64,000 nt of DNA from Macrostomum lignano (Eukaryota), in contig NIVC01000991.1 in assembly GCA_002269645.1 (NCBI GenBank), positions 124,001 through 188,000 of the forward strand, read 5' to 3'. Both the position numbers and the translations under genes were made by a program. Shown here in pieces: positions 6,720-37,500 of this stretch (its first letter is position 1; every line of letters begins with the position of its first letter). Under the pieces are notes generated by a model that saw only the letters and a program-made list of their open reading frames with translations, was not told the origin of the DNA and searched no databases.

Positions 6720-9700
6720 CTACAGCGGCAGAGGCTGGCTGGATCCCAGAGCCCCAGCAGGCAGCCGGAACCTCGGCTCTCTAGGCTGATCTGACAGGCA
6801 GCGGCTGAGGCAGTCGAGAATTCGCCTCTCGGACTCCTGTCGAGGCTCCGAGCCGGCGGGCTGGTCTTTGCAGAGAACCCTGGCCAGCTGGCGGCACAGC
6901 AGGTCGCGGTGGACGCCATTCTTGTCGGAGTTGGCCAGCAGCTCCTGCGGTTGCCAGGGAGCGGGGGCGGATGGGACGCTTTTACAACTACCGAGGTTCA
7001 TCAGGGGGCAGAAATAGGGCGGGTCAAGCAAGGGAAGGGGGCGGAAATAGGGCGGGTCAAGCAAGGGAAGGGGCGGAAATAGGGCGGGTCAAGCAAGGGA
7101 AGGGGCGGAAATAGGGCGGGTCAAGCAAGGGAAGGGGCGGAAATAGGGCGGGTCAAGCAAGGGAAGGGGCGGAAATAGGGCGGGTCAAGCAAGGGAAGGG
7201 GCAGAAATAGGGCGGGTCAAGCAAGGGAAGGGGGCGGAAATAGGGCGGGTCAAGCAAGGGAAGGGGCGGAAATAGGGCGGGTCAAGCAAGGGAAGGGGCG
7301 GAAATAGGGCGGGTCAAGCAAAGGAAGGGGCGGAAATAGGGCGGGTCAAGCACTGAAGGAGGTCTAAATACGAGTAAAAAAGAGATCAGATGAGGAATAA
7401 ATAAATGATAAAAATCACCTGGGCCAAATCCAGTACCAAGCAGAGCAGATTAGCGGCCAGGGGCGAGCCGGGCTCGGGCAACAACGAATCCGGCAGACAC
7501 TCTAAATAGACAAACAGAGTCTGCAGGTAGGACTTGCCGGCAATGGACTCTAACGGCAGTTCGTCCATCAGATCTGTGGATGTAAGCAGCTCAGCGGAGC
7601 GCAGAATCTCTTCGGTATTGGTCACGTCCGTGAGCAGGTCCTGAGTAGTCAGGTGGTGCCGGCGGATGTGACGGATGAGGCGGACAACCTCGCGTGGAAG
7701 CGGCTGCGGCTCGGTTAGGAAGCCTGAGTATGCGGGAGTGGGAAGAGGTTGATCCAGGGGAATAATTATATCTATCCGCAAGATCCACAGATACCATAGC
7801 ACCTTGAATGTTCTTTGTGTTATCCTGAGTATTAGAATCATTCCAATAAAATATCCCCTATAAATTTATCCCTATGGGATATCCCTACCAACTTATCTCT
7901 ATGGGATATCCCCTACAAATTTATCCCTATGGAATATCTCCTACAAATTTATCCCTATGGAATATCTCCTACAAATAATACCCTATTGGATATCCCCTAC
8001 CAACATATCCCTATTGAATATCCCCTACCAACATATCCCTATTGAATATCCCCTACCAACATATCCCTATTGAATATCCCCTACCAACATATCCCTATTG
8101 AATATCCCCTACCAACATATCCCTATTGGATATCCCCTACCAACATATCCCTATTGGATATCCCCTACCAACATATCCCTATTGAATATCCCCTACCAAC
8201 ATATCCCTATTGAATATCCCCTACCAACATATCCTTATTGGATATCCCCTACCAACATATCCCTATTGAATATCCCCTACCAACATATCCCTATTGAATA
8301 TCCCCTACCAACATATCCCTATTGAATATCCCCTACCAACATATCCTTATTGGATATCCCTACCACGCAACTTATCCCTATGAGATATCCCCTACCAACT
8401 TATACCTATGGGATATCCTCAACACATTTATCCCTATCCACGCACAAATCCCAATCCACCCACCCGGCAACTGTCCGAAACTGGCCGAAACGCTCTCTAC
8501 ATCGTCGTCGTATTTGTCCGGATTTTCGCCAGTCGCCGCGGCCGAGCCACGGCGATAGGCCAGCCGGATGGCCGCTCGAAGGTCGTCAGGTTCGAGCCGG
8601 GACACCGGGCGGGCGAGTCGGCAGGCAACGGCGAGTGGCAGGCCGAAACAGGTGGGCACCAGATCCGCCTGTGGTATGAGGAAGAAGTGCTTCCCGCCAG
8701 TCAGCACCTGCAGGGAGGGGAGGCAGTGTTAGGGGTGACAGCGCCTGGGATTTTTTAATAGATTCGATGAGATTTTTGTATGAGACTAATATGAGATTCT
8801 AATGTGAGATTCTTGTATGAGATCCTGATGTGAGATTCTGATGTGAGATTCTTGTATGAGACTCTAATATGAGATTCTGATGTGAGATTCTTGTATGAGA
8901 CTCTAATATGAGATTCTGATGTGAGATTCTTGTATGAGACTCAAGTATGAGATTCTAATGTAAGACTCTAGTATGAGATCCTGATGTGAGATTCTGGTAT
9001 GAGATTCTCAGGATTCCAGACTCACCACAACAAGGATGTCCTCTGGTCTGAACACCGGATTAGGCTGCTCCTCGGCCCACCGGCGCATCGCCTCGGCAAT
9101 GTGCCTGTCCTTCAACGACAACGACAATTTGATTGACTGTTGCGAGTCCACGTCAATCCTAGACGTGGTTGGCGTCAGCCGCATAAAAGCCGGGCAAGTG
9201 TCGCCGCCAAAGGCGTCGCTGCCGTTGAAATGCCAGCGCACCGGGACGCGGCCAGTGTTGCGCAAGGACACGCCGGTCTCGTAGGTTTCGAAGAAAGCCA
9301 CCTGGCCGAAGCTTATCTACAGTTGGTTATTTGTTGTTTCGATACATATCGGCTAGATAGTAAAGGACTTTTATCAGCTAATAACCAAATCAATCATGAC
9401 CAAATATACTACTTACTAGTAGCTAGAGATGACACCCTAATGATTAAATTCACATACTTTAACTAATATATGACCGAATCTACCTACTAATGACCGAATC
9501 TACCTACTAATTACCGAATCTACCTACTAATGATCGAATCTACCTACTAATGATGAAATCTACCTACTAATGACCGAATCTACCTACTAATGATCGAATC
9601 TACTTACAAATGATCTAATCTACCAACTAATGACTGAATCTACCTACTTAATGACCGAATCTACCTATCAACGACCTAAAATAACTACTAATGACCGAAT

Positions 9701-12700
9701 CTACCTAATAATTATTGAATTCACCTACTAATGACCGAATCTATATAACTAATGATCGAATCTACCTATTAATAACCGAATCTATCTATCAATGACAGAA
9801 TCTACCTATGAAAGACCGAATCTACCTATCAACGACCTAATATAACTACTAATGACCGAATCAACCAATTAATGACCGAATCTACCTACTAATGACCGAA
9901 TCTACCTACCAATGACCGAATCTACCTACTTAATGACCGAATCTACCCACTAATGACAGAATCTACCTACTAATGACCGAATCTACCTACTAATGACCGA
10001 ATCTACCTACTAATGACAGAATCTACCTACTAATGACCGAATCTACCTACTTAATGACCGAATCTACCCACTAATGACAGAATCTACCTACTAATGACCG
10101 AATCTACTTACAAATGATCTAATCTACCCACTAATGACTGAATCTACCTACTAATTTAATCTACTGAATCTACCTACTAATCTACTTACTACGAATTTAC
10201 CTATTAATGACCAAATCTACTGAATTTCGAATGCAATCAAGCTTTCAATTACCTCATGTCCGGGATCTAGCACGCACTGCGGCAAAATAGCATTCTCCAG
10301 CTGATCAATCAGCCTAATCACCTCGCGATAAACTCTCTGCCTTCGCTCCTGATTCACCTTGGCAATGTCAACTTGCAACACGCAGGCCACTGGCTTGTGA
10401 TCGCTCATCTGGTTGCTAAGGAAACAATCATACTTAATAACCTTGCAGGGCACAGAGGCAGAGTGGAACAGTACCCGATCGCACCAGCTGGGTATTCGCG
10501 ATTTCTCCACAGCGTACTGATTGCCGCCCACTTCGAATTTGTACGACGGCTTGAAGTTAATTTTCTCTTCCTGTAGTTTGCGGGTAAAAAAGCACGTGTG
10601 CTATTAAACTACTGACAATTCAGTAGTATTCACGATCATTTCTTTTAAATAAACATTTGCAAACAAATACTGCAGCGATTACTTAATTAGAAGTGCTAAT
10701 ATTAATGAAAGTTAATTTTTTATTTCTGTATTAAGCGGGGAAAATCGTATATGCAATTAAGCTACTGAGAAGTCAGTAGTATCAGTAGTTAAATACTCGT
10801 TATTGCCCTTAAAAAGGCCCGTTAAAAAATAGTCTCTCGATCGAATTTAACTCTAGCAACTTTGGAGCCACTCTTTTGACTTTCTAACGACTTAAACGAC
10901 TGTGATGCGACGGAGGCGCGACTTTTGAGTCACGTGATTTATAGAATCATAAAAAGAGTCGCCAAAAAAGTCGTCCAAGAATCGTTAAGTCAACGCTTAA
11001 CTTTCTATTAACTCAATTAGACAAAATAGTTGTTATAAATGCGTAATTCAGTGATTCTAGCACGCCTCAGACACGACTCTACGGTCCCAGTATGTCACTA
11101 TAGAAGTGTTCCAAAGTCGTTTCAGAGTCGCAGACAATATTAAAAAACCTTTGACGACTCGTAAAGAGCCACTTCTTTCCAATTTGACCTGTGTTACCTG
11201 CAACAACTCTGAAGCGACTCTGTGACTTCTGCCAAATGAGAAGTTATTAACTGTGTTATAAGTTGCCAAATTATTTTTATTTATTGAGGTAGATACGTTT
11301 CATTGATTTACTGACGCAATCTAAAGTATATTTTAGTGTCCTTAAAAGGGCCGTTTTACTATTTTACAAAAAATCTACTTAGAGACTTAGTAATAAAGTG
11401 ATGAAAGTAGTGCTTAGAGAGTTATCTTGAAGCGATCAAACCTGACCTGGAATCCTTCAAACATGTCAGCATAGCGGCTCCACTGCGGCTCAGGTTTCTT
11501 CTTCAACTGTCTAACCAGATTCAATTCGTCGTGAAAGTCCAATAATCGATCGAATTTCCCGTGATTAACCAATCGTTCAACTTCGTCGCGTTCAATTCTA
11601 ACTAGGCGAAAATTTAAATCGCCAAACCAGAACATCGCGTGGTGCTCGCTGTCCGAAGCCAGGAACTCGAACTCGCCAGACTCGCCCTGCTGTTGGCCAG
11701 TTGAGTAACCGTCCCCTGGTTGCGTTTTGAATAGCTTCAACTTCACCAGAATGTCCTGACATTGTGGTAGGTGATTAGGGCAAACTTTACAATAAACATT
11801 TCATTCTGACGAACTCATAAGGAGTTTGTCAAACTTAAAAATATTGGCTGGTGGGTTTTTGTGCCATTCATAGCCATGAGGGCCAAACCCCAGACACAGA
11901 TCTAAAAGCGTGTGTACTTTAATGAAACAGATCTAAGAGCGTGTGTACTTAAATGGCCCATATCTAAGACCATGAGTACTTTAATGGCTCAGATCTAAGA
12001 CCGTGTGTACTTTAATGACACAGATCTAAGAGCGTGTGTACTTAAATGGCCCATATCTAAGACCATGAGTACTTTAATGGCTCAGATCTAAGACCGTGTG
12101 TACTTTAATGACACAGATCTAAGAGCGTGTGTACTTTAATGGCCCAGATCTAAGACCGCGTGTACTTTAATGGCACAGATCTAAGACCGTGTGTACTTTA
12201 ATGGCCCAGATCTAAGAGCGTGTGTACTTAAATGACACAGATCTAAGAGCGTGTGTACTTAAATGACACAGATCTAAGAGCGTGTACTTAAATGACACAG
12301 ATCTAAGAGCGTGTGTACTTAAATGACACAGATCTAAGAGCGTGTGTACTTAAATGACACAGATCTAAGAGCGTGTGTACTTAAATGACACAGATCTAAG
12401 AGCGTGTGTACTTAAATGACACAGATCTAAGAGCGTGTGTACTTAAATGACACACAGATCTAAGAGCGTGTGTACTTAAATGACAGATCTAAGACCGTGT
12501 GTACTTAAATGGCCCAGATCTAAGACCATGAGTACTTTAATGGCTCAGATCTAAGAGCGTGTGTACTTTAATGGCCCAGATCTAAGACCGTGAGTTCTTT
12601 AATGGCTCAGATCTAAGAGCGTGTGTACTTTAATGGCACAGATCCATGAGCGATGTTAGCCATTCACCTTAGGAAACGTTAGTAACTTTGTCTTAGAGCA

Positions 12701-23264: not shown

Positions 23265-23856
23265 ATCGCCGGCTTTGAAAGTCAGATACCGGACTACAAT
23301 CGAGCCAAACTGTGGTGGAAGTCACGAAAAAGGAATAACACTCGGTCTTTAAAGTGGAACTGCTTAGTTTTTACAAGGCCTGTGTTTCCAAAAAAAGTTC
23401 ACTGCCGAAAGCAAGAAAATTTACAACGCGCATTTGCCATAGCAAGCTGTTTTACCAAGGAATCTTTGGCACCTATTTCGGACAATCTTTTGCGATAATC
23501 ACATACGAAATCAGATAATAACTTGCTTTGCAAAATGCAGCTGCTCACTACAAAAGACAACTATAAACGATAAACTTTGCAGTGCAAGAAGAATCAATCG
23601 ATAGTGCCATTCGTGATCATTCGACTTAAATTTTAGCAAACTCAATCTTCAAATGGAATGAATCGATGAAAATGCATCTGTACGAACGTACGAGCGCAAT
23701 GGTTTACATAATTTACTTAATTATCCCAAAACGGTATACTATGAATACATGTGCTCTAACATAACAGTGGTAGACTAGGTGGCAGGCATACTCGTATTTT
23801 TAATTGCTCGAAATTCAAGCTTGTTTTTGTTAAATACCGTAAGGGAAGGACTCAGG

Positions 23857-24855
23857 TCTTCGATGAGTGTCTCACAGGACTGACTTATGTTGTCTTTGAT
23901 GAGTGTCTCACAGGACTGACTTACTCGTAGGTTGTTTTTGATGAGTGTCTCACAAGACTGACTCAGGTTGTCTTTGATGAGTGTCTCACAGGACTGATTC
24001 AGGTTGTCTTTGATGAGTGTCTCACAGGACTGACTTAGGTGGTCTTTGATGAGTGTCTCACAGGACTGACTTACTCGTAGGTTGTTTTTGATGAGTGTCT
24101 CACAAGACTGACTCAGGTTGTCTTTGATGAGTGTCTCACAGGACTGACTTAGGTGGTCTTTGATGAGTGTCTCACAGGACTGACTCAGGTTGTCTTTGAT
24201 GAGTGTCTCACAGGACTGACTTAGGTTGTCTTTGATGAGTGTCTCACAGGACTGACTTACTCGTAGGTTGTCTTTGATGAGTGTCTCAGGACTGACTCAG
24301 GTTGTCTTTGATGAGTGTCTCACAGGACTGACTTAGGTTGTCTTTGATGAGTGTCTCAGGACTGACTCAGGTTGTCTTTGATGAGTGTCTCACAGGACTG
24401 ACTTAGGTTGTCTTTGATGAGTGTCTCAGGACTGACTCAGGTTGTCTTTGATGAGTGTCTCACAGGACTGACTTACTCGTAGGTTGTCTTTGATGAGTGT
24501 CTCACAGGACTGACTCATGTTGCCTTTGATGAGTGTCTCACAGGACTGACTCAGGTTGTCTTTGATGAGTGTCTCACAGGACTGACTTACGTTGTCTTTG
24601 ATGAGTGTCTCACAGGACTGACTTATGTTGTCTTTGATGAGTGTCTCACAGGACTGACTTATGTTGTCTTTGATGAGTGTCTCACAGGACTGACTTATGT
24701 TGTCTTTGATGAGTGTCTCACAGGACTGACTCATGTTGCCTTTGATGAGTGTCTCACAGGACTGACTCAGGTTGCCTTTGATGAGTGTCTCACCGGACTG
24801 ACTCATGTTGTCTTTGATGAGTGTCTCACAGGACTGACTTATGTTGTCTTTTATA
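23857..24855. repeat. 36-bp minisatellite with 34- and 42-bp variants
   Basis: Unit gttgtctttgatgagtgtctcacaggactgactcag. Confidence 0.96.
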
Positions 24856-25249
24856 AGTGTTCTTTTAGTTAATCCTAAATTTAGAAAAAACATGACACTA
24901 AATTACTTAAAGTAATACCGCAATCAAATTTAGCGAGAAAACTGTGTCGCATACCAAAATTAGAATTAATTTATAGGCATAATTTTCTCCAAATACAAGT
25001 GAAATACAATATATTAATTAGGCAATAAAGTAAGCAAATCAATTGGAAATCAGCAACTTAAGCGTCAGCGGCAAAACAAAAAAATTCTCCATAAAATTAG
25101 TAATAGGAAAGACGTGAAATTTATGTTTTTTCCCAAAACTACTCTATAAACATCGGTAAGCTACGCATTAATTATCAAATGAGTCAGCGCTAATTGTGTG
25201 CCAAGCATTGCGAATGGAGGATTATACTCATATTTAACGATAAGATAGT

Positions 25250-25786
25250 TCACCGGAGCACCAGCAGAGACACGCAGGCGGACAGAATAACGCACAGGAC
25301 AGCGGCTAGCAACCATTGCCGTTTCGAAGGCTTTCCAACTCTAAGAATATGCAGCTTAGCATCTAGCAGAGCCTCCGCCTGAGGAAAACTTGAGCCCAGT
25401 ATGACAAATCCGTGGCCCCGACGGATGTACATTCGACATCGGGGATAAGGATGCTGGCGCATCAGCTCGACTAGAGCGGCCGTATCTTCCGGCGTTGAGA
25501 ATAGCGTCTCAACGTTCGAGCAGGGCACGTTGATTGCAGCAGCTTTTGCCTCGGTTTCAAACGCGTGCCCGTGCAAGCTGACAGACGCTGTGCGACTCTC
25601 CAGCAGGGCCGACCAGTGCAGCGGAGTGTCGCTGGTTGGCTGAATCTCCGAGCTGCTGGCGTAATAGCCGCACGACCAGGCGGTGAAATCGAAGCTTGTG
25701 ACTACGCAGAAGTCGCGCTCGGTGTCCGATGGGCCTTGTGCTCGGCCCGATCTGAGGGGTGACAGCAGTAGCAGTAGTAGTAGTAA

Positions 25787-25843
<57 letters not shown>

Positions 25844-26228
25844 AATAGTAGAAATTTTCACAAAGACTATATTTGTTTTAATCTAAAACATGCCATTAAA
25901 TTCCATAGATCATTTTGTACCTGCTAACCAACAGAGTCAGCTGATCGTCGCCTCCAACGCCGCCTGCAGTTCGCGCCAACACCGCGGCCGCATTGCCAGC
26001 CAGTCGGCCGTCGGGTGCAACCGGCGCAGCGCCTCGGTCCTGCATCCACTCCAGCGCGCAGGCCATGGTCAGCAGGTTGGCGTCGAATTTCTCTCGCTGC
26101 TCGGCGGTGGTGCCGGCAGCGTGCCACCAGTCCTCCAGACGGCCGAGGTAGCGGCAGTTGAACTTGACGCGAACGCCGACCTCGTCTGACACGCCGCCGG
26201 CAGATTTTGAGGCCTCGCCATCGGGCAT
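25250..26228 (-). CDS. Class II aldolase/adducin-fold metalloprotein with C-terminal tail anchor, ~269 aa
   Basis: Exons 25921-26228 and 25250-25751 (phase-2 GT-AG, 810 bp total). Motifs: VKFNC, PDG..AGN, LVSRSG, VTSFD, QPTSDTPLH, SLHGH and RGHGFVILG. It ends KPSKRQWLLAAVLCVILSACVSLLVLR*. An acceptor-like ctaacag near 26280 could add an upstream exon. Confidence 0.8.
25766..25849. repeat. (TAG)n microsatellite in the aldolase-like gene intron
   Basis: About 27 triplets just upstream of the exon 2 acceptor. Confidence 0.95.
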
Positions 26229-26315: not shown

Positions 26316-26882
26316 AGGATCTGGGAGGCTGGCCCAGCAACTGACACTCTGGGAGGCTGGCCCAGCAACTCAGGATCTGGGAGGCTGGCCCAGCAACTGA
26401 CACTCTGGGAGGCTGGCCCAGCAACTCAGGATCTGGGAGGCTGGCCCAGCAACTCAGGATCTGGGAGGCTGGCCCAGCAACTGAGGATCTGGGAGGCTGG
26501 CCCAGCAACTCAGGATCTGGGAGGCTGGCCCAGCAACTGACACTCTGGGAGGCTGGCCCAGCAACTCAGGATCTGGGAGGCTGGCCCAGCAACTGAGGAT
26601 CTGGGAGGCTGGCCCACTAACTGAGGATCTGGGAGGCTGGCCCACCAACTGAGGATCTGGGAGGCTGGCCCAGCAACTGAGGATCTGGGAGGCTGGCCCA
26701 CCAACTGAGGATCTGGGAGGCTGGCCCAGCAACTGAGGATCTGGGAGGCTGGCCCACCAACTGAGGATCTGGGAGGCTGGCCCAGCAACTGAGGATCTGG
26801 GAGGCTGATCCAGCAACTGAGGATCTGGGAGGCTGGCCCAGCAACTGACACTCTGGGAGGCTGGCCCAGGAACTGAGGATCT
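26316..26882. repeat. 28-bp minisatellite, locus 2 (same family as 5756-6584)
   Basis: Identical consensus and the shared actgacactct variant. Confidence 0.96.
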
Positions 26883-27404
26883 GCTAAGTTCAAAATTAAA
26901 TCGAAGCGAATGCAAATATCAAATTCATTGCCAATATATTTCGTACTAAGCTACTAATTGGTAAGAAGCAGCAGGCTACGACAGACTTTTTAGTGATGCA
27001 GCAAAGCATAAAGCTGATAGGTTCATGAAGTTGGAGAACAGATTATATTATTAATAATGAGACAGAACAACATAGCCACATGGGATACATGGACAGAATA
27101 GGTGGTAATGCTATTTGAGATGTTGCATGCAAATAAAACCTCTCACTAACTAACAAAGATTAGTGAGTTAGAGCCAGGTGAAATCGTACAAGTATGCCAG
27201 AGTGGGTAGTAAAGCGGTAATGAACCTGCATGGATAATATATTAAATATGCAAACAGTGTTAACTGAATAAAATCATACTTTGACTTTTGAAACAGCTCA
27301 AATGGGAAAGAGAAGGAATTAACATGTGAGTAGATTACACTCGAAATGAGATACGAATCTCGTCATAGAGATGCAGGTTGCGACATGGAAAATCTACTAC
27401 GAGA

Positions 27405-27895
27405 TAGGATCTGAATCTCACCCGAGACACGAGATCTGAATCTCACCCGAGACATGAGATCTGAATCTCACTAAAGACATGAGATCTGAATCTCACCCGA
27501 GACATACGAGTAAGATCTGAATCTCACCCAAGACATGAGATCGGAATCTCACCCGAGACATGAGATCTGAATATCACCCGAGACATACGAGTAAGATCTG
27601 AATCTCACCCGAGAAATAAGATCGGAATCTCACCCGAGACACGAGATCTGAATCTCACCCGAGACATGAGATCTGAATCTCACCCGAAACATGAGATCTG
27701 AATCTCACCCTAGACATGAGATCTGAATCTCACTAAAGACATGAGATCTGAATCTCACCCAAGACATGAGATCGGAATCTCCCCCGAGACATGAGATCTG
27801 AATCTCACCCGAGACATACGAGTAAGATCTGAATCTCACCCGAGACATACGAGTAAGATCTGAATCTCACCCTAGACATGAGATCTGAATTTCAC
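27405..27895. repeat. 25-bp minisatellite
   Basis: Unit gagatctgaatctcacccgagacat, with a recurring acgagta insertion variant. Confidence 0.93.
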
Positions 27896-32626: not shown

Positions 32627-33814
32627 TCAACAGCGGATTGCGTTGGGCGTGAGTAAAGCTTAGAGGTGAGCTTGACAGCAAGACAATTGCAAAGATGGTA
32701 ATAATCTGAAAAAAAACCTGCGGGATTAGTAAACTGAATGAGTGTATTATTTTATTTTATAATGAAAATATTACTAGCAAACCTCTCCTTTGATTAATAA
32801 TCAAGTTATGGTAATCCTGTGTTTGTATTATTACACCTATCCTTATTGATCCCCTATTCATGATAATCCACATATCTTTAATAATCCCCTTTTCATGATA
32901 GACTACGAATCCTTATTAATCCACTATTCACTACAATCAAATCCTTATTAATTCCCTATTCACGATAATCCACCTATCCTTACTAATCCAATCCTTAATA
33001 ATCTCCAATTCACGATAACCGCCTCATTCGTAATAATCCCCTATTCACAATAATCCACCCGATCCTTATCAGCAATAATACTATCCTCAAGTTAATCCCA
33101 AGCCATACTGCCTCTACAAGTTAAAAATAGAAATCAGAAACACGCGAGCCAAAAAAGAATCAGGATACGCGCAGTGTATTCACATAGGTTAATTAATCCG
33201 ATTTGGAATTGACAATAAACGGCCACAAAACAAAAATAACGACAATGACTAAAACACATACAAACTGAGAAGCTTGATCTTTCCGATTAAAATCAATAAT
33301 GCGAATTTGCCAAAAATGCTCTAAACAACAGCTACTGTGTCAATTCTTCATCTGAACTGTTTTAAAAACAAAATATAAAATCTATTATAAAAAACTCAAA
33401 ATACTTTTAATATTGAAGCAAAACAACAATGAAAGCGCTACAGAGAACACAGGAGAATAATAAAAAATACTGCATTGTTACTGAAAAAGACAATTCACTC
33501 GACAACAAAAACATATATAATAGGAATTATAAAATATAAAATTATGACTTCTAACTCCATTTATAGGGCATTCGACGCTTCTAAGCTAACTAATTAATCT
33601 AAGTTGTTGTTTATTAATCACGAGAAATGCTCACAACAACGAACGCTCTTACTAATAGTAGAATGTATCAGAAAAAAAACACTGAGCGATTTAAAAATTG
33701 AATCGACTGGAAAGTATCACTTTACGGCTTACTTAATTAATGTGGATCTAATTTACTAAGACAAAGAGTATTGCGCTTCAGTTGTGATTGTCATTGTGAT
33801 TCAGGAGGTGATTA

Positions 33815-34390
33815 TCAGTGATTTAGGGACTGATTATCAGTGTGATTCAGGTGATTATCAGTGTGATTCAGGTGATTATCAGTGTGATTCAGGGGCTGAT
33901 TATCAGTGTGATTCAGGGGCTGATTATCAGTGTGATTCAGGGGCTGATTATCGGTGTGATTCAGGGGCTGATTATCGGTGTGATTCAGGGGCTGATTATC
34001 AGTGTGATTCAGGGGCTGATTATCAGTGTGATTCAGGGGCTGATTATCAGTGTGATTCAGGGACTGATTATCGGTGTGATTCAGGGGCTGATTATCAGTG
34101 TGATTCAGGGGCTGATTATCAGTGTGATTCAGGGGCTGATTATCAGTGTGATTCAGGGACTGATTATCGGTGTGATTCAGGGGCTGATTATCAGTGTGAT
34201 TCAGGGGCTGATTATCAGTGTGATTCAGGGACTGATTATCAGTGTGATTCAGGGACTGATTATCAGTGTGATTCAGGGACTGATTATCGGTGTGATTCAG
34301 GGGCTGATTATGAGTGTGATTCAGGTCGTTACTCGTTATCAGTGTGATTCAGGTCGTTATCATTTGGATTCAGGGGAAGGTTATCAGTGA
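33815..34390. repeat. 24-bp minisatellite
   Basis: Unit ctgattatcagtgtgattcagggg, ~22 copies, between the RGS 3' end and the zinc-finger gene 5' end. Confidence 0.96.
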
Positions 34391-34546
34391 TTCAAAGGGG
34401 CATGATTACTGAGGTTTAAGAGCGATGAAGTTTAAACACTGGAATGAGATCTTGATATATCCAAGAACTTTTTACTACCGATATGTAAACGTAAATCGAT
34501 TTGGATCGCTTTGCGCGTGGATACGAGATGTAGAGTGTTGTCAAAG

Positions 34547-37500
34547 TCAGTTGGTGCCGCCGCCGCCGCCGCCGCCGCCGCCACAGCTTCCACCGCTGGA
34601 GCTGGTCGTGGCAACGGCACCGGTAGCAGCCGCCGCTATGTCGGTGTCACCCGGACATCCGCCGCTATTAGGGTCGGAAGAGGGGCCGGCGCCGCCAGAC
34701 GAAGCAGTGGCCGCCAGATTTTTTCTAACATCGCTAGGAAATCGTTTCTTACTTTTCTTTTTACAGCCGGCCAACAGGTCGCGATAATAGTCGGAGTGAA
34801 CAAACCGACTATAAGAGTCCGTCCTCATCAGCTGATAGATATTCTCTTCGGCCTCTTCGAATGCGAATCGATCCGATAGCCGGCCTTCCATTCGACGTCG
34901 GACTCGTTCGGCCACGTGGCCGGCCAAGTTGACCGGCTCTTGGGCGTCCGGGCCGAGAAAATTCGAATAGATTCGCTGCAGCTCGGCGCCAACTTGGCTC
35001 AGGGGGATTCGGCGAAGTTCCTGACAAGGATTTTAGCGTAGGCGGGGAGAGCGGTGAGAGGCTGTTCTACAAGGCGGATGGGGTCCGATTTTTAATGCTG
35101 GATTAGAGGCGATTTTTAGGGTGCTTGATGAAGGCAATTATAATATCGCTTGGAGGGCGATTCTCAGGGTGATTGAAGGGCGATTCTCAGGGTGATTGAA
35201 GGGCGATTCTCAGGGTGATTGAAGGGCGATTCTCAGGGTGATTGAAGGGCGATTCTCAGGGTGATTGAAGGGCGATTCTCAGGGTGATTGAAGGGCGATT
35301 CTCAGGGTGATTGAAGGGCGATTCTCAGGGTGATTGAAGGGCGATTCTCAGGGTGATTGAAGGGCGATTCTCAGGGTGATTGAAGGGCGATTCTCAGGAT
35401 GATTGAAGGGCGATTCTCAGGGTGATTGAAGGGCGATTCTCAGAGTGATGAAAGAGCAATTTTCAGGGTTATTAAAGGGCGATTTTCAGGGTGATAGAAG
35501 GGCGATTCTCAGCGTTGTTAAAGGGCGATTCTTAAGGTGGTTAAAGGGCGATTCTTAGGGTTGTTAAGGGCGATTCTCTGGGTGATAAAAGGGAAATTCT
35601 CAGGGTGATTAAAGGGCGATTCTCAGGGTGATTAGAGAGAGATTCTCACTGTGAATAAACTGATACAATGGGATATAAGGCAAATTCAACTCGAATTCTA
35701 GATGGATATATTGAAAGTGATTAACAAAGGTGAGTTACTTAATTCCTTAAGACTAGGGTTGAAAATTCCAGTTCCCAGAGCATTAAACCTGAACCCACGT
35801 TTTCCATGTTTTCGGTAATGAAATTTCCTAAAAGAAATCGATTTAACGTGTCTGCATGCTTGCGTGCTAAAAAAAAGATTTTATTTAGAAATTACAATTT
35901 TCTGCTTGGATAATTGGCTGAAGCATCTGGGAGGGCGGACGATATCCATGTCCTTAATTTCGATTGCAATAATAATATTTTTTCTACTGACAAGTTAGAA
36001 AACTATGGTTTAGGGATCTAGACTATTGGTTTGGGGTTTTAGACTATTGGTTTACGGACTTAGATTATTGGTTTAGGGATCTAGACTATTGGTTTAGGGA
36101 TCTAGATTATTGGTTTAGGGATCTAGATTATTGGTTTAGGGATCTAGACTATTGGTTTAGGGATCTAGATTATTGGTTTAGGGATCTAGATTATTGATTT
36201 AGGGATCTAGATTATCGGTTTAGGGATCTAGACTATTGGTTTAGGGTTCTAGACTATTTGCTATTTCTGCAAATATTTGCTATTTATAAACATAAAAGCA
36301 TCAACACTAAACAAACCTGACAAGCCTCCCAGAAGCTGAGGTTCTCCCTGCTAAACTCCTTCTCCAGCCAGCGCTCGAACTCAATTCTACCAGCCGGGTC
36401 CCTTAGCAACTCTTGCATGTCGAAGGCCCATCGCTTCACCCGCCTAGCCGGTATGTCGTGAGTTCGCCGTTCCGACTCCCAAAACTCTAGCGAATCCGTG
36501 GCCCATGGATTCGGACAGGACTCCGGTAGGCCGCCGCCTAAGAATGCGTCGAATTCCAGCCACTGGCTGCAGTGGGCGGTGAAGCACTCGGCCGATTTCG
36601 ATATCTGTGAATTAAAGGGTGATGTAATAGCGGTCAGATCGGACATGAAATATAAAAACATGCTAGATTAAAGAACAGCAGTTTGACCAGCCCGGCTGGG
36701 ACGCTGCAATCTGGCGATAGGAACAGGCGGACAGGAACGCTACCGGTGAGGACAGGCACCCTACCGGTGAGGACAGGCACCCTACCGGTGAGGACAGGCA
36801 CCCTACCGGTGAGGACAGGCACCCTACCGGTGAGGACAGGCACCCTACCGGTGAGGACAGGCACCCTACCGGTGAGGACAGGCACCCTACCGGTGAGGAC
36901 AGGCACCCTACCGGTGAGGACAGGCACCCTACCGGTGAGGACAGGCACCCTACCGGTGAGGACAGGCACCCTACCGGTGAGGACAGGCACCCTACCGGTG
37001 AGGACAGGCACCCTACTGGTGAGGACAGGCACAATACCGGTGAGGACAGGCACCCTACCGGTGAGGACAGGCACCCTACCGGTGAGGACAGGCACCCTAC
37101 CGGTGAGGACAGGCACCCTACCGGTGAGGACAGGCACCCTACCGGTGAGGACAGGCACCCTACCGGTGAGGACAGGCACCCTACCGGTGAGGACAGGCAC
37201 CCTACCGGTGAGGACAGGCACCCTACCGGTGAGTAGAACCACCCTACCGGTGAAGACAGGCACCCTACCGGTGAGGACAGGCACCCTACCGGTGAGGACA
37301 GGCACCCTACCGGTGAAGACAGGCACCCTACCGGTGAGGACAGGCACAATACCGGTGAGGACAGGCACCCTACCGGTGAGGACAGGCACCCTACCGGTGA
37401 GGACAGACATGCATCTCAAATTTGGTTTGCTTGTCGAAACAATCCATGCAGATGAATCAGGAATCTATCAACATGCAAATAGAAGCTTGTCACAGCGAAG

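Follow-up and report, generated by a model that had tools for sequence, protein, structure and literature searches.

A predicted tail-anchored class II aldolase-fold enzyme in the flatworm Macrostomum lignano belongs to a small, mostly eukaryotic protein family

Enzymes with the class II aldolase fold are viewed as soluble tetramers of the cytosol; the active sites of these homotetramers lie where subunits meet, and the neighboring subunit contributes a second catalytic acid/base residue (Tyr113' in FucA; Asp120'/Tyr229' in AraD). Here we describe a two-exon gene of the flatworm Macrostomum lignano whose product joins a divergent domain of this fold to a hydrophobic C-terminal segment. The gene lies at positions 25250 to 26228, on the minus strand, of a 64,000-nucleotide stretch of contig NIVC01000991.1 (assembly GCA_002269645.1); this whole stretch is referred to as the window, and its numbering is used throughout. 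We propose, with a probability of roughly two in three (0.68), that the gene encodes a divalent-metal class II aldolase-fold enzyme with a tail anchor predicted for the endoplasmic reticulum (ER), and that it belongs to a small, mainly eukaryotic subfamily.

The assignment of residues ~20-240 to a divergent class II aldolase/adducin-fold domain draws on structure prediction and profile comparison. An AlphaFold2 monomer model was built on a 21-sequence family alignment and reached a predicted local distance difference test score (pLDDT) of 89.4 and a predicted template modeling score (pTM) of 0.84. A Foldseek search of the PDB with this model returned 80 hits at E<=0.001; the 50 best were inspected, and all 50 have the class II aldolase fold, with a probability of 1.00. 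The top hit was AraD (1jdi_A, E 1.6e-8), and the matches also included FucA, RhaD, YgbL, a DrdA-type aldolase, TqaM, pyruvic oxime dioxygenase and adducin. Alignment of the family with a comparison profile of five E. coli sequences (FucA, AraD, SgbE, UlaF and YgbL) by hhalign gave a probability of 91.6 % (E 8e-7, 130 columns), in agreement with the fold that the preliminary description of the locus had suggested; against the single FucA and AraD sequences the same comparison was weak (0.8 % and 28 %). The connection to known members thus came only through the fold search and the profile-profile comparison. Fifteen of the 21 relatives match PF00596, the class II aldolase/adducin superfamily, at E<=0.01, with a best E of 2.8e-10. 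The family shares the profile similarity and the alpha/beta fold of this superfamily and, by alignment, its three-histidine and carboxylate site and its phosphate positions. The model also contains an additional N-terminal strand, RVKF (residues 24-29), that is specific to the family.

The metal-site pattern recognized in the preliminary description is retained, with motifs TSD (142-144), HGH (163-165) and GHG (215-217). D144, H163, H165 and H216 are invariant in the 21 aligned relatives, while N79, S104-G105 and T142-S143 either do not vary or are kept in at least 90 % of family sequences. Each of these residues has a counterpart in FucA and AraD, at positions that are the known phosphate and metal sites of the two enzymes (Dreyer-Schulz and Tanner-lab work); the numbering of these positions was checked. 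On the phosphate side, N79 (25992-25994) aligns with N29 of FucA and N28 of AraD, and S104-G105 (25745-25750; S104 invariant, G105 at least 90 %) with T43-G44 and S44-G45, respectively. T142-S143-D144 (25628-25636) aligns with FucA S71-S72-E73 and AraD S74-S75-D76, and would supply both phosphate contacts and the carboxylate metal ligand. The predicted first two histidine ligands, in H163-G164-H165 (25565-25573), correspond to H92/H94 in FucA and H95/H97 in AraD, and the predicted third, H216 (25412-25414), to H155 and H171. Asp in place of the usual Glu had been singled out at the carboxylate position; the residue was read correctly, but it is not unusual, since it reproduces the state of the AraD epimerase (PSSDTPTH in AraD, PTSDTPLH here). 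Between the second and third histidines lies the almost invariant signature motif of the family, ETLFSTPED (184-192; 25484-25510). A three-histidine and carboxylate metal site is therefore predicted to be intact, and, since the phosphate-binding positions are kept as well, the protein is most likely an active divalent-metal enzyme.

Beyond the last helix of the domain, the polypeptide continues with the basic linker VGKPSKR (241-247; 25319-25339), followed by QWLLAAVLCVILSACVSLLVL (248-268) and a single R269 (together 25253-25318), and then the stop codon. The hydrophobic 21-residue tail with basic flanks noted in the preliminary description is thus confirmed, with KPSKR before the segment and one arginine after it. 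The segment holds no charged residue, has a Kyte-Doolittle mean of 2.49 over its 21 residues and 2.98 over the best 19, and is the sole strongly hydrophobic window of the protein; the N-terminus is acidic and polar and carries no signal. The AlphaFold2 model places a helix at 246-268 (pLDDT 84-92). The third-position GC content (GC3) of the tail codons is 0.63, compared with 0.68 for the whole coding sequence, and the 3' flank after the stop falls to 30 % GC. One transmembrane domain (TMD) covering residues 248-268 of 269, with no signal peptide and no other TMD, is the arrangement expected of tail-anchored proteins, whose TMD lies no further than ~30 residues from the C-terminus, and we predict this topology from the C-terminal TMD together with the lack of an N-terminal signal. 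According to a targeting rule established in mammalian cells, such proteins go to the ER when their TMD is hydrophobic and their tail bears little charge, and to peroxisomes when the tail is highly charged (PMC5450235). Under this rule the hydrophobic segment and its tail charge of +1 predict the ER as the likeliest destination.

These features suggest a model for the protein. The domain would bind a small phosphorylated keto or hydroxy substrate and stabilize its enediolate on the metal, a step common to aldolases, the AraD epimerase, the MtnB dehydratase and YgbL-type decarboxylases. Seven basic or polar residues would lead from the domain into the 21-residue hydrophobic helix, which ends one residue before the stop and would be inserted post-translationally as a tail anchor, with the enzyme domain left facing the cytosol from an endomembrane, most likely the ER.

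Comparison with other family members highlights that appendages of this kind have appeared repeatedly. In six variants of one metagenomic clade (P0172, P0174 and P0258-P0261), the C-terminus consists of a conserved hydrophobic stretch and then RTKLRAR, a predicted tail anchor with a charge of +4 that would be of the peroxisomal type under the same rule (PMC5450235). In the annelid Owenia fusiformis, an N-terminal hydrophobic segment with basic flanks has a first exon to itself, which lies 1.9 kb upstream of the single exon for the whole catalytic domain (8001-8129 and 10017-10712 of its locus, L005), and this anchor looks like an addition by exon gain. One further member, P0057, has an N-terminal TMD followed by KRKRK. 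Strict type 1 peroxisomal targeting signal (PTS1) tripeptides (SKL, AKL, ARL, SRL or SHL) end eight of 197 members (P0032, P0053, P0076, P0086, P0092, P0098, P0112 and P0115), whereas about 0.5 would be expected by chance according to a hand estimate from typical amino-acid frequencies. Some protist members are thus probably peroxisomal matrix proteins, and we treat the peroxisome link as a lead rather than a result. In four sequences of the hydrozoan (Clytia) type (P0255, P0227, P0055 and P0232), the C-terminus is extended by a Lys/Arg-rich stretch that closes with KPYNLR(K/S)R... and looks like a nuclear localization signal, a third type of addition to the common core. Judged from their sequences, members of the family have repeatedly gained different targeting appendages; the flatworm tail would then be one of several independent solutions, which argues for a functional tail. 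The tail had been called unusual for a soluble family, and this holds for class II aldolases at large; within its own family it is less exceptional, given the other members with C- or N-terminal anchors or PTS1 endings.

The gene model on which this analysis rests is that of a real, expressed two-exon gene. The minus-strand exons 26228-25921 and 25751-25250 join to 810 nt, or 269 codons and a stop, with a product of 269 amino acids that is 100 % identical to the GenBank 'hypothetical protein' BOX15_Mlig002213g4 of M. lignano. The GenBank annotation of this assembly was built from an RNA-seq-guided transcriptome with TransDecoder open reading frames (ORFs) (PMC5730564), and the gene model, including the tail, thus rests on transcript evidence. 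Exon 1 opens at the ATG (26228-26226) with MPDGEAS..., has an in-frame stop 17 codons upstream of this start, and runs to the donor GTACAA at 25920. This exon accounts for residues 1-102, along with two bases of codon 103, and covers a disordered N-terminus, the RVKF strand, a long helix and the PDGxxxGN loop. The intron (25752-25920) had been proposed in the preliminary description and is borne out: its 169 bp have GT..AG ends and 32 % GC, against 58-67 % in the exons, and the acceptor CCCCTCAG ends at 25752. Retention of the intron would lead to a stop after eight codons. The splice junction falls within L-L-V-S|R-S-G-R and aligns without a gap with the V-S-K-S-G-K motif of every homologue (family motif V-S-x-S-G). 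Exon 2 encodes residues 103-269, that is, the remaining catalytic domain and the tail, and its frame is open to the TGA at 25252-25250.

Several observations weigh against the function and location that we propose. The M. lignano protein alone scores 19.2 bits (E 0.0012) against PF00596, below the gathering score of 22.2, even though most of its relatives match this model, and the PDB, searched by sequence with the protein as well as the family profile, yielded no aldolase and no solved structure. The TM-scores of the Foldseek matches are only ~0.5-0.6, at identities of 13-17 %. From the HxH motif to the next strand, the family is ~14-16 residues shorter than FucA and AraD; in a low-confidence alignment, in which the length difference is nevertheless robust, the FucA segment A100-I115, including Tyr113, has no counterpart. 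The chemistry may therefore differ from that of FucA, since the shortened stretch sits where FucA carries Tyr113; sequence alignment assigns neither the second catalytic residue nor, with it, the reaction type. The ER prediction is extrapolated from a rule set in mammalian cells. Three supplements hold no mention of Mlig002213 expression, and no localization or activity data were found in the literature.

The shortened segment also fits a different kind of function, in which the domain is not a sugar-phosphate enzyme and acts as a non-heme-iron oxygenase of the TqaM or pyruvic oxime dioxygenase type, or as a non-catalytic scaffold like adducin. Chains of all three are found among the Foldseek hits (E ~1e-6 to 1e-5), and a three-histidine site is able to hold Fe(II). 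We consider such a role unlikely: the positions of the FucA/AraD phosphate site (GN, SG and T/S-S) are all conserved across the family, the invariance of the four ligand positions argues against a scaffold alone, and the best fold and profile matches are to AraD and FucA. Even less probable, in our view, is that the tail is something other than a membrane anchor, namely read-through in the annotation, a 3' end that has degenerated, or a hydrophobic helix that packs against the tetramer. Most relatives stop ~22-24 residues after GHGF with no hydrophobic tail, and selection on the tail is not measurable because the two genomic copies of the gene are identical; set against this are the length and uncharged character of the segment, its mean hydropathy of 2.5-3.0, the coding-like GC3 that persists up to the stop before the GC content drops, the presence of the tail in the transcript-based annotation, and the C-terminal TMD kept by six sequence variants of another clade. 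A membrane-anchored metal enzyme thus remains our preferred reading of the gene.

The layout RVKF...PDG..GN defines the family to which this protein belongs. When 1.84 billion cluster representatives were scanned exhaustively with HMMER, the family profile matched 313 clusters at E<=1e-3, of which 121 reached E<=1e-30. The hits are unnamed, but with so few clusters passing E<=0.001 the very large canonical class II aldolase families were presumably not reached to any extent. The family is small, distinct and mostly eukaryotic. Its members include dinoflagellates (Symbiodinium spp., Effrenium, Polarella and Oxyrrhis), Chromera, Euglena, the foraminifer Nonionella and the green alga Parachlorella; among animals besides M. 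lignano, they comprise the cnidarian Clytia and six annelids, with the genera Owenia, Capitella, Paralvinella, Lamellibrachia and Ridgeia named. No other flatworm, mollusc or further bilaterian name occurs among the family hits. The gene is thus not alone among animals, and yet it forms no broadly conserved animal orthogroup. Unnamed members lie on eukaryote-like contigs, with sparse ORFs on a 5.4-Mb contig, class-C G-protein-coupled receptor neighbors, or compact SET/PHD/START neighbors. In two gene calls the domain is joined to other modules: in P0207 to a sulfotransferase's C-terminal portion (PF00685), on a contig of 1.5 kb where an apparent intron is also translated in frame, and in P0202 to an ion-transport domain, in a Symbiodinium necroappetens model. 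Such fusions could be real or could stem from faulty gene models.

Scanned for the family motif, 185,579 prokaryotic species yielded a single locus, in a metagenome-assembled genome (MAG) of the Nannocystaceae, and no archaeal member; the scan misses variants of ETLFSTP[EDA]D, and its count of bacterial members is accordingly a lower bound. A second bacterial member was found on a metagenome contig (JGI). At both loci the member lies between htpG (Hsp90) and a vWA/YfbK gene (L003, 797-6411; L009, 4102-8758). At the second of these loci the member begins 7 nt after the end of htpG, a gap that suggests co-transcription with the chaperone gene. The bacterial neighborhood, with htpG, vWA/YfbK and a BamB-like beta-propeller gene, was considered as a functional clue and gave no metabolic hint. 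Among viral contigs, no giant virus or phage was found to carry the family.

The origin of the M. lignano gene was approached with bootstrapped neighbor-joining (NJ) trees on 111 and on 30 taxa. In NJ trees a single large clade with weak support takes in the cnidarian and every annelid, and Macrostomum sits outside it on a long branch; the best bootstrap value for its placement is 13 % with 111 taxa and 46 % with 30, so that the trees do not place Macrostomum. Sub-profiles of the family score the M. lignano protein at 238 bits (animal-rich), 225 bits (alveolate/euglenid), 181 bits (bacteria-like) and 168 bits (chlorophyte-like). Of the single hits, the best (44 %) is on a genomic contig that is hydrozoan-like; its intron has a different position, and it lacks the tail. 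A short spacing of 18 residues between TSD and HGH is common to Macrostomum and the hydrozoan-type sequences; as a marker of kinship it is not decisive, because it also occurs in a PTS1-bearing protist group. Diagnostic columns split evenly and are too few to decide.

While it is difficult to separate patchy vertical retention from horizontal transfer on this evidence, we give the former about an even chance. Horizontal transfer from a microbial eukaryote of the alveolate type, with the intron, the native codon usage and the tail gained later, is somewhat less probable. In its favor, the 30-taxon trees pair Macrostomum with the dinoflagellate Oxyrrhis in 46 % of replicates, and its sister group is made up of protists only in 51 % of bootstraps, compared with 12 % for animals only; the position of Macrostomum outside the annelid and cnidarian clade points the same way, as do the lack of further bilaterian names among the hits and an intron position common to neither Owenia nor the hydrozoan-like locus L010. 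The bootstrap values are, however, under any accepted threshold and attach to a long branch, the diagnostic columns favor neither side, the animal-rich sub-profile scores highest, the best single hit is of the hydrozoan type with the same spacing, and the GC3 of the gene equals that of its neighbors. A prokaryote-type enzyme acquired from bacteria or archaea, in line with the bacterial and archaeal layout claimed in the preliminary description, is highly improbable. Bacterial members do exist, and a bacterial sister group appears in 18 % of bootstraps; against this stand the lone locus and the lack of any archaeon in the motif scan, a bacteria-like score well below those of the animal-rich and alveolate/euglenid sub-profiles, and the eukaryotic nature of most named or context-checked members. 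A more far-reaching picture would be an unrecognized, organelle-associated eukaryotic family, with PTS1 endings in protists, independent anchors in animals and a reaction new to the fold, whose Macrostomum copy came from an alveolate-like donor and was made tail-anchored; we regard this combination as a long shot.

The residence of the gene in an animal genome, as first described, is well founded. It is present on two homeologous contigs of the assembly, NIVC01000991.1, where it stands in reverse orientation in the window, and NIVC01000013.1; within the 64-kb window no second copy was found. Both contigs share the neighbor order of an RGS/DEP gene, a gene of 733-738 amino acids and then the aldolase-fold gene, and on NIVC01000013.1 an OCRL-like gene is called beyond it. 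All 810 exon bases are identical between the copies. They differ in the 169-bp intron by six substitutions and by indels covering 36 positions; the kilobases to either side show 20 and 46 substitutions. Contamination was considered and rejected: the two contigs (391 kb and 1.39 Mb) with their animal neighbors, the intron and the native-like GC3 (0.60-0.70 in coding-like ORFs of neighboring genes) rule out both contamination and a transfer in the very recent past. The two copies of the gene are of unequal length, at 979 bp and 1015 bp, and most of this difference reflects the length of an intron microsatellite, (TAC)n/(AGT)n, of ~29 units at 25767-25851.

Repeats are frequent around the locus. 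Minisatellite arrays flank the gene at 23856-24860, 26316-26883 and 27408-27895: the downstream array has 27 units of 36 bp, an array of 20 units of 28 bp begins ~90 bp upstream of the start codon, and another, of 25/81 bp, lies further upstream. They yield long spurious ORFs on both strands. Another tandem array, with a period of ~24 bp (33785-34634), adjoins the RGS/DEP gene and produces a ladder of BLAST hits between the homeologous contigs.

The gene itself was already deposited as a hypothetical protein, and the family is unstudied in the literature on its named members: searches found no paper on the named accessions of the gene or of its named relatives, and a full-text search found no paper mentioning both class II aldolase and tail-anchoring. 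As a kind of system it is not radically new. If true, a tail-anchored member would give the class II aldolase fold a new architecture, and the family around it displays N-terminal anchors and PTS1 endings as well. A family of ~300 clusters with a complete predicted metal and phosphate site would mark a metabolic activity common to dinoflagellates, euglenids, algae, annelids, a cnidarian and one flatworm, and its patchy distribution in animals makes it a useful case for weighing gene loss against transfer from eukaryote to animal. RNA interference works in M. lignano. Transgenesis has also been established in this species (PMC5730564), and with these tools the localization and loss of function of the protein are directly testable.

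Of the known systems, AraD and its relatives SgbE and UlaF are the closest in structure: AraD leads the Foldseek hits, shares the Asp-type ligand motif, and aligns at the GN, SG, HxH and HG positions. Identity is however only 15-16 %, and no NCBIfam epimerase model matched at E<=10; the stretch after HxH is ~14 residues shorter in the M. lignano family, which in addition has the extra RVKF strand and the ETLFSTPxD signature, and AraD is soluble whereas the M. lignano protein has a membrane tail. The Asp-ligand motif is thus shared with the 4-epimerases, and neither equivalog-level similarity nor the catalytic pair is. FucA has the same fold, with many hits of the 1fua/1dzu type at target-normalized TM-scores of ~0.6, and its phosphate and metal positions correspond; it differs in Glu73, which is replaced by Asp in the M. 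lignano protein, in the segment A100-I115, and in an identity of 13-15 %. MtnB/APIP belongs to the same superfamily and supplies the best NCBIfam match (TIGR03328, E 1.5e-4), yet a score of 21.3 bits against a cut-off of 137 indicates that the M. lignano protein is not an MtnB equivalog, consistent with its original separation from the animal APIP/MtnB type. Adducin belongs to the cytoskeleton, lacks enzymatic activity and has a long neck and tail on its C-terminal side. Its head domain shares the fold (an 8iah chain is among the Foldseek hits) and the Pfam family PF00596; the M. lignano protein, in contrast, is a single domain with a TMD, and its predicted metal ligands are invariant. With the tail-anchored clients of GET/TRC40 or PEX19 it has in common one C-terminal TMD with a single residue beyond it, the lack of an N-terminal signal, and a basic flank.

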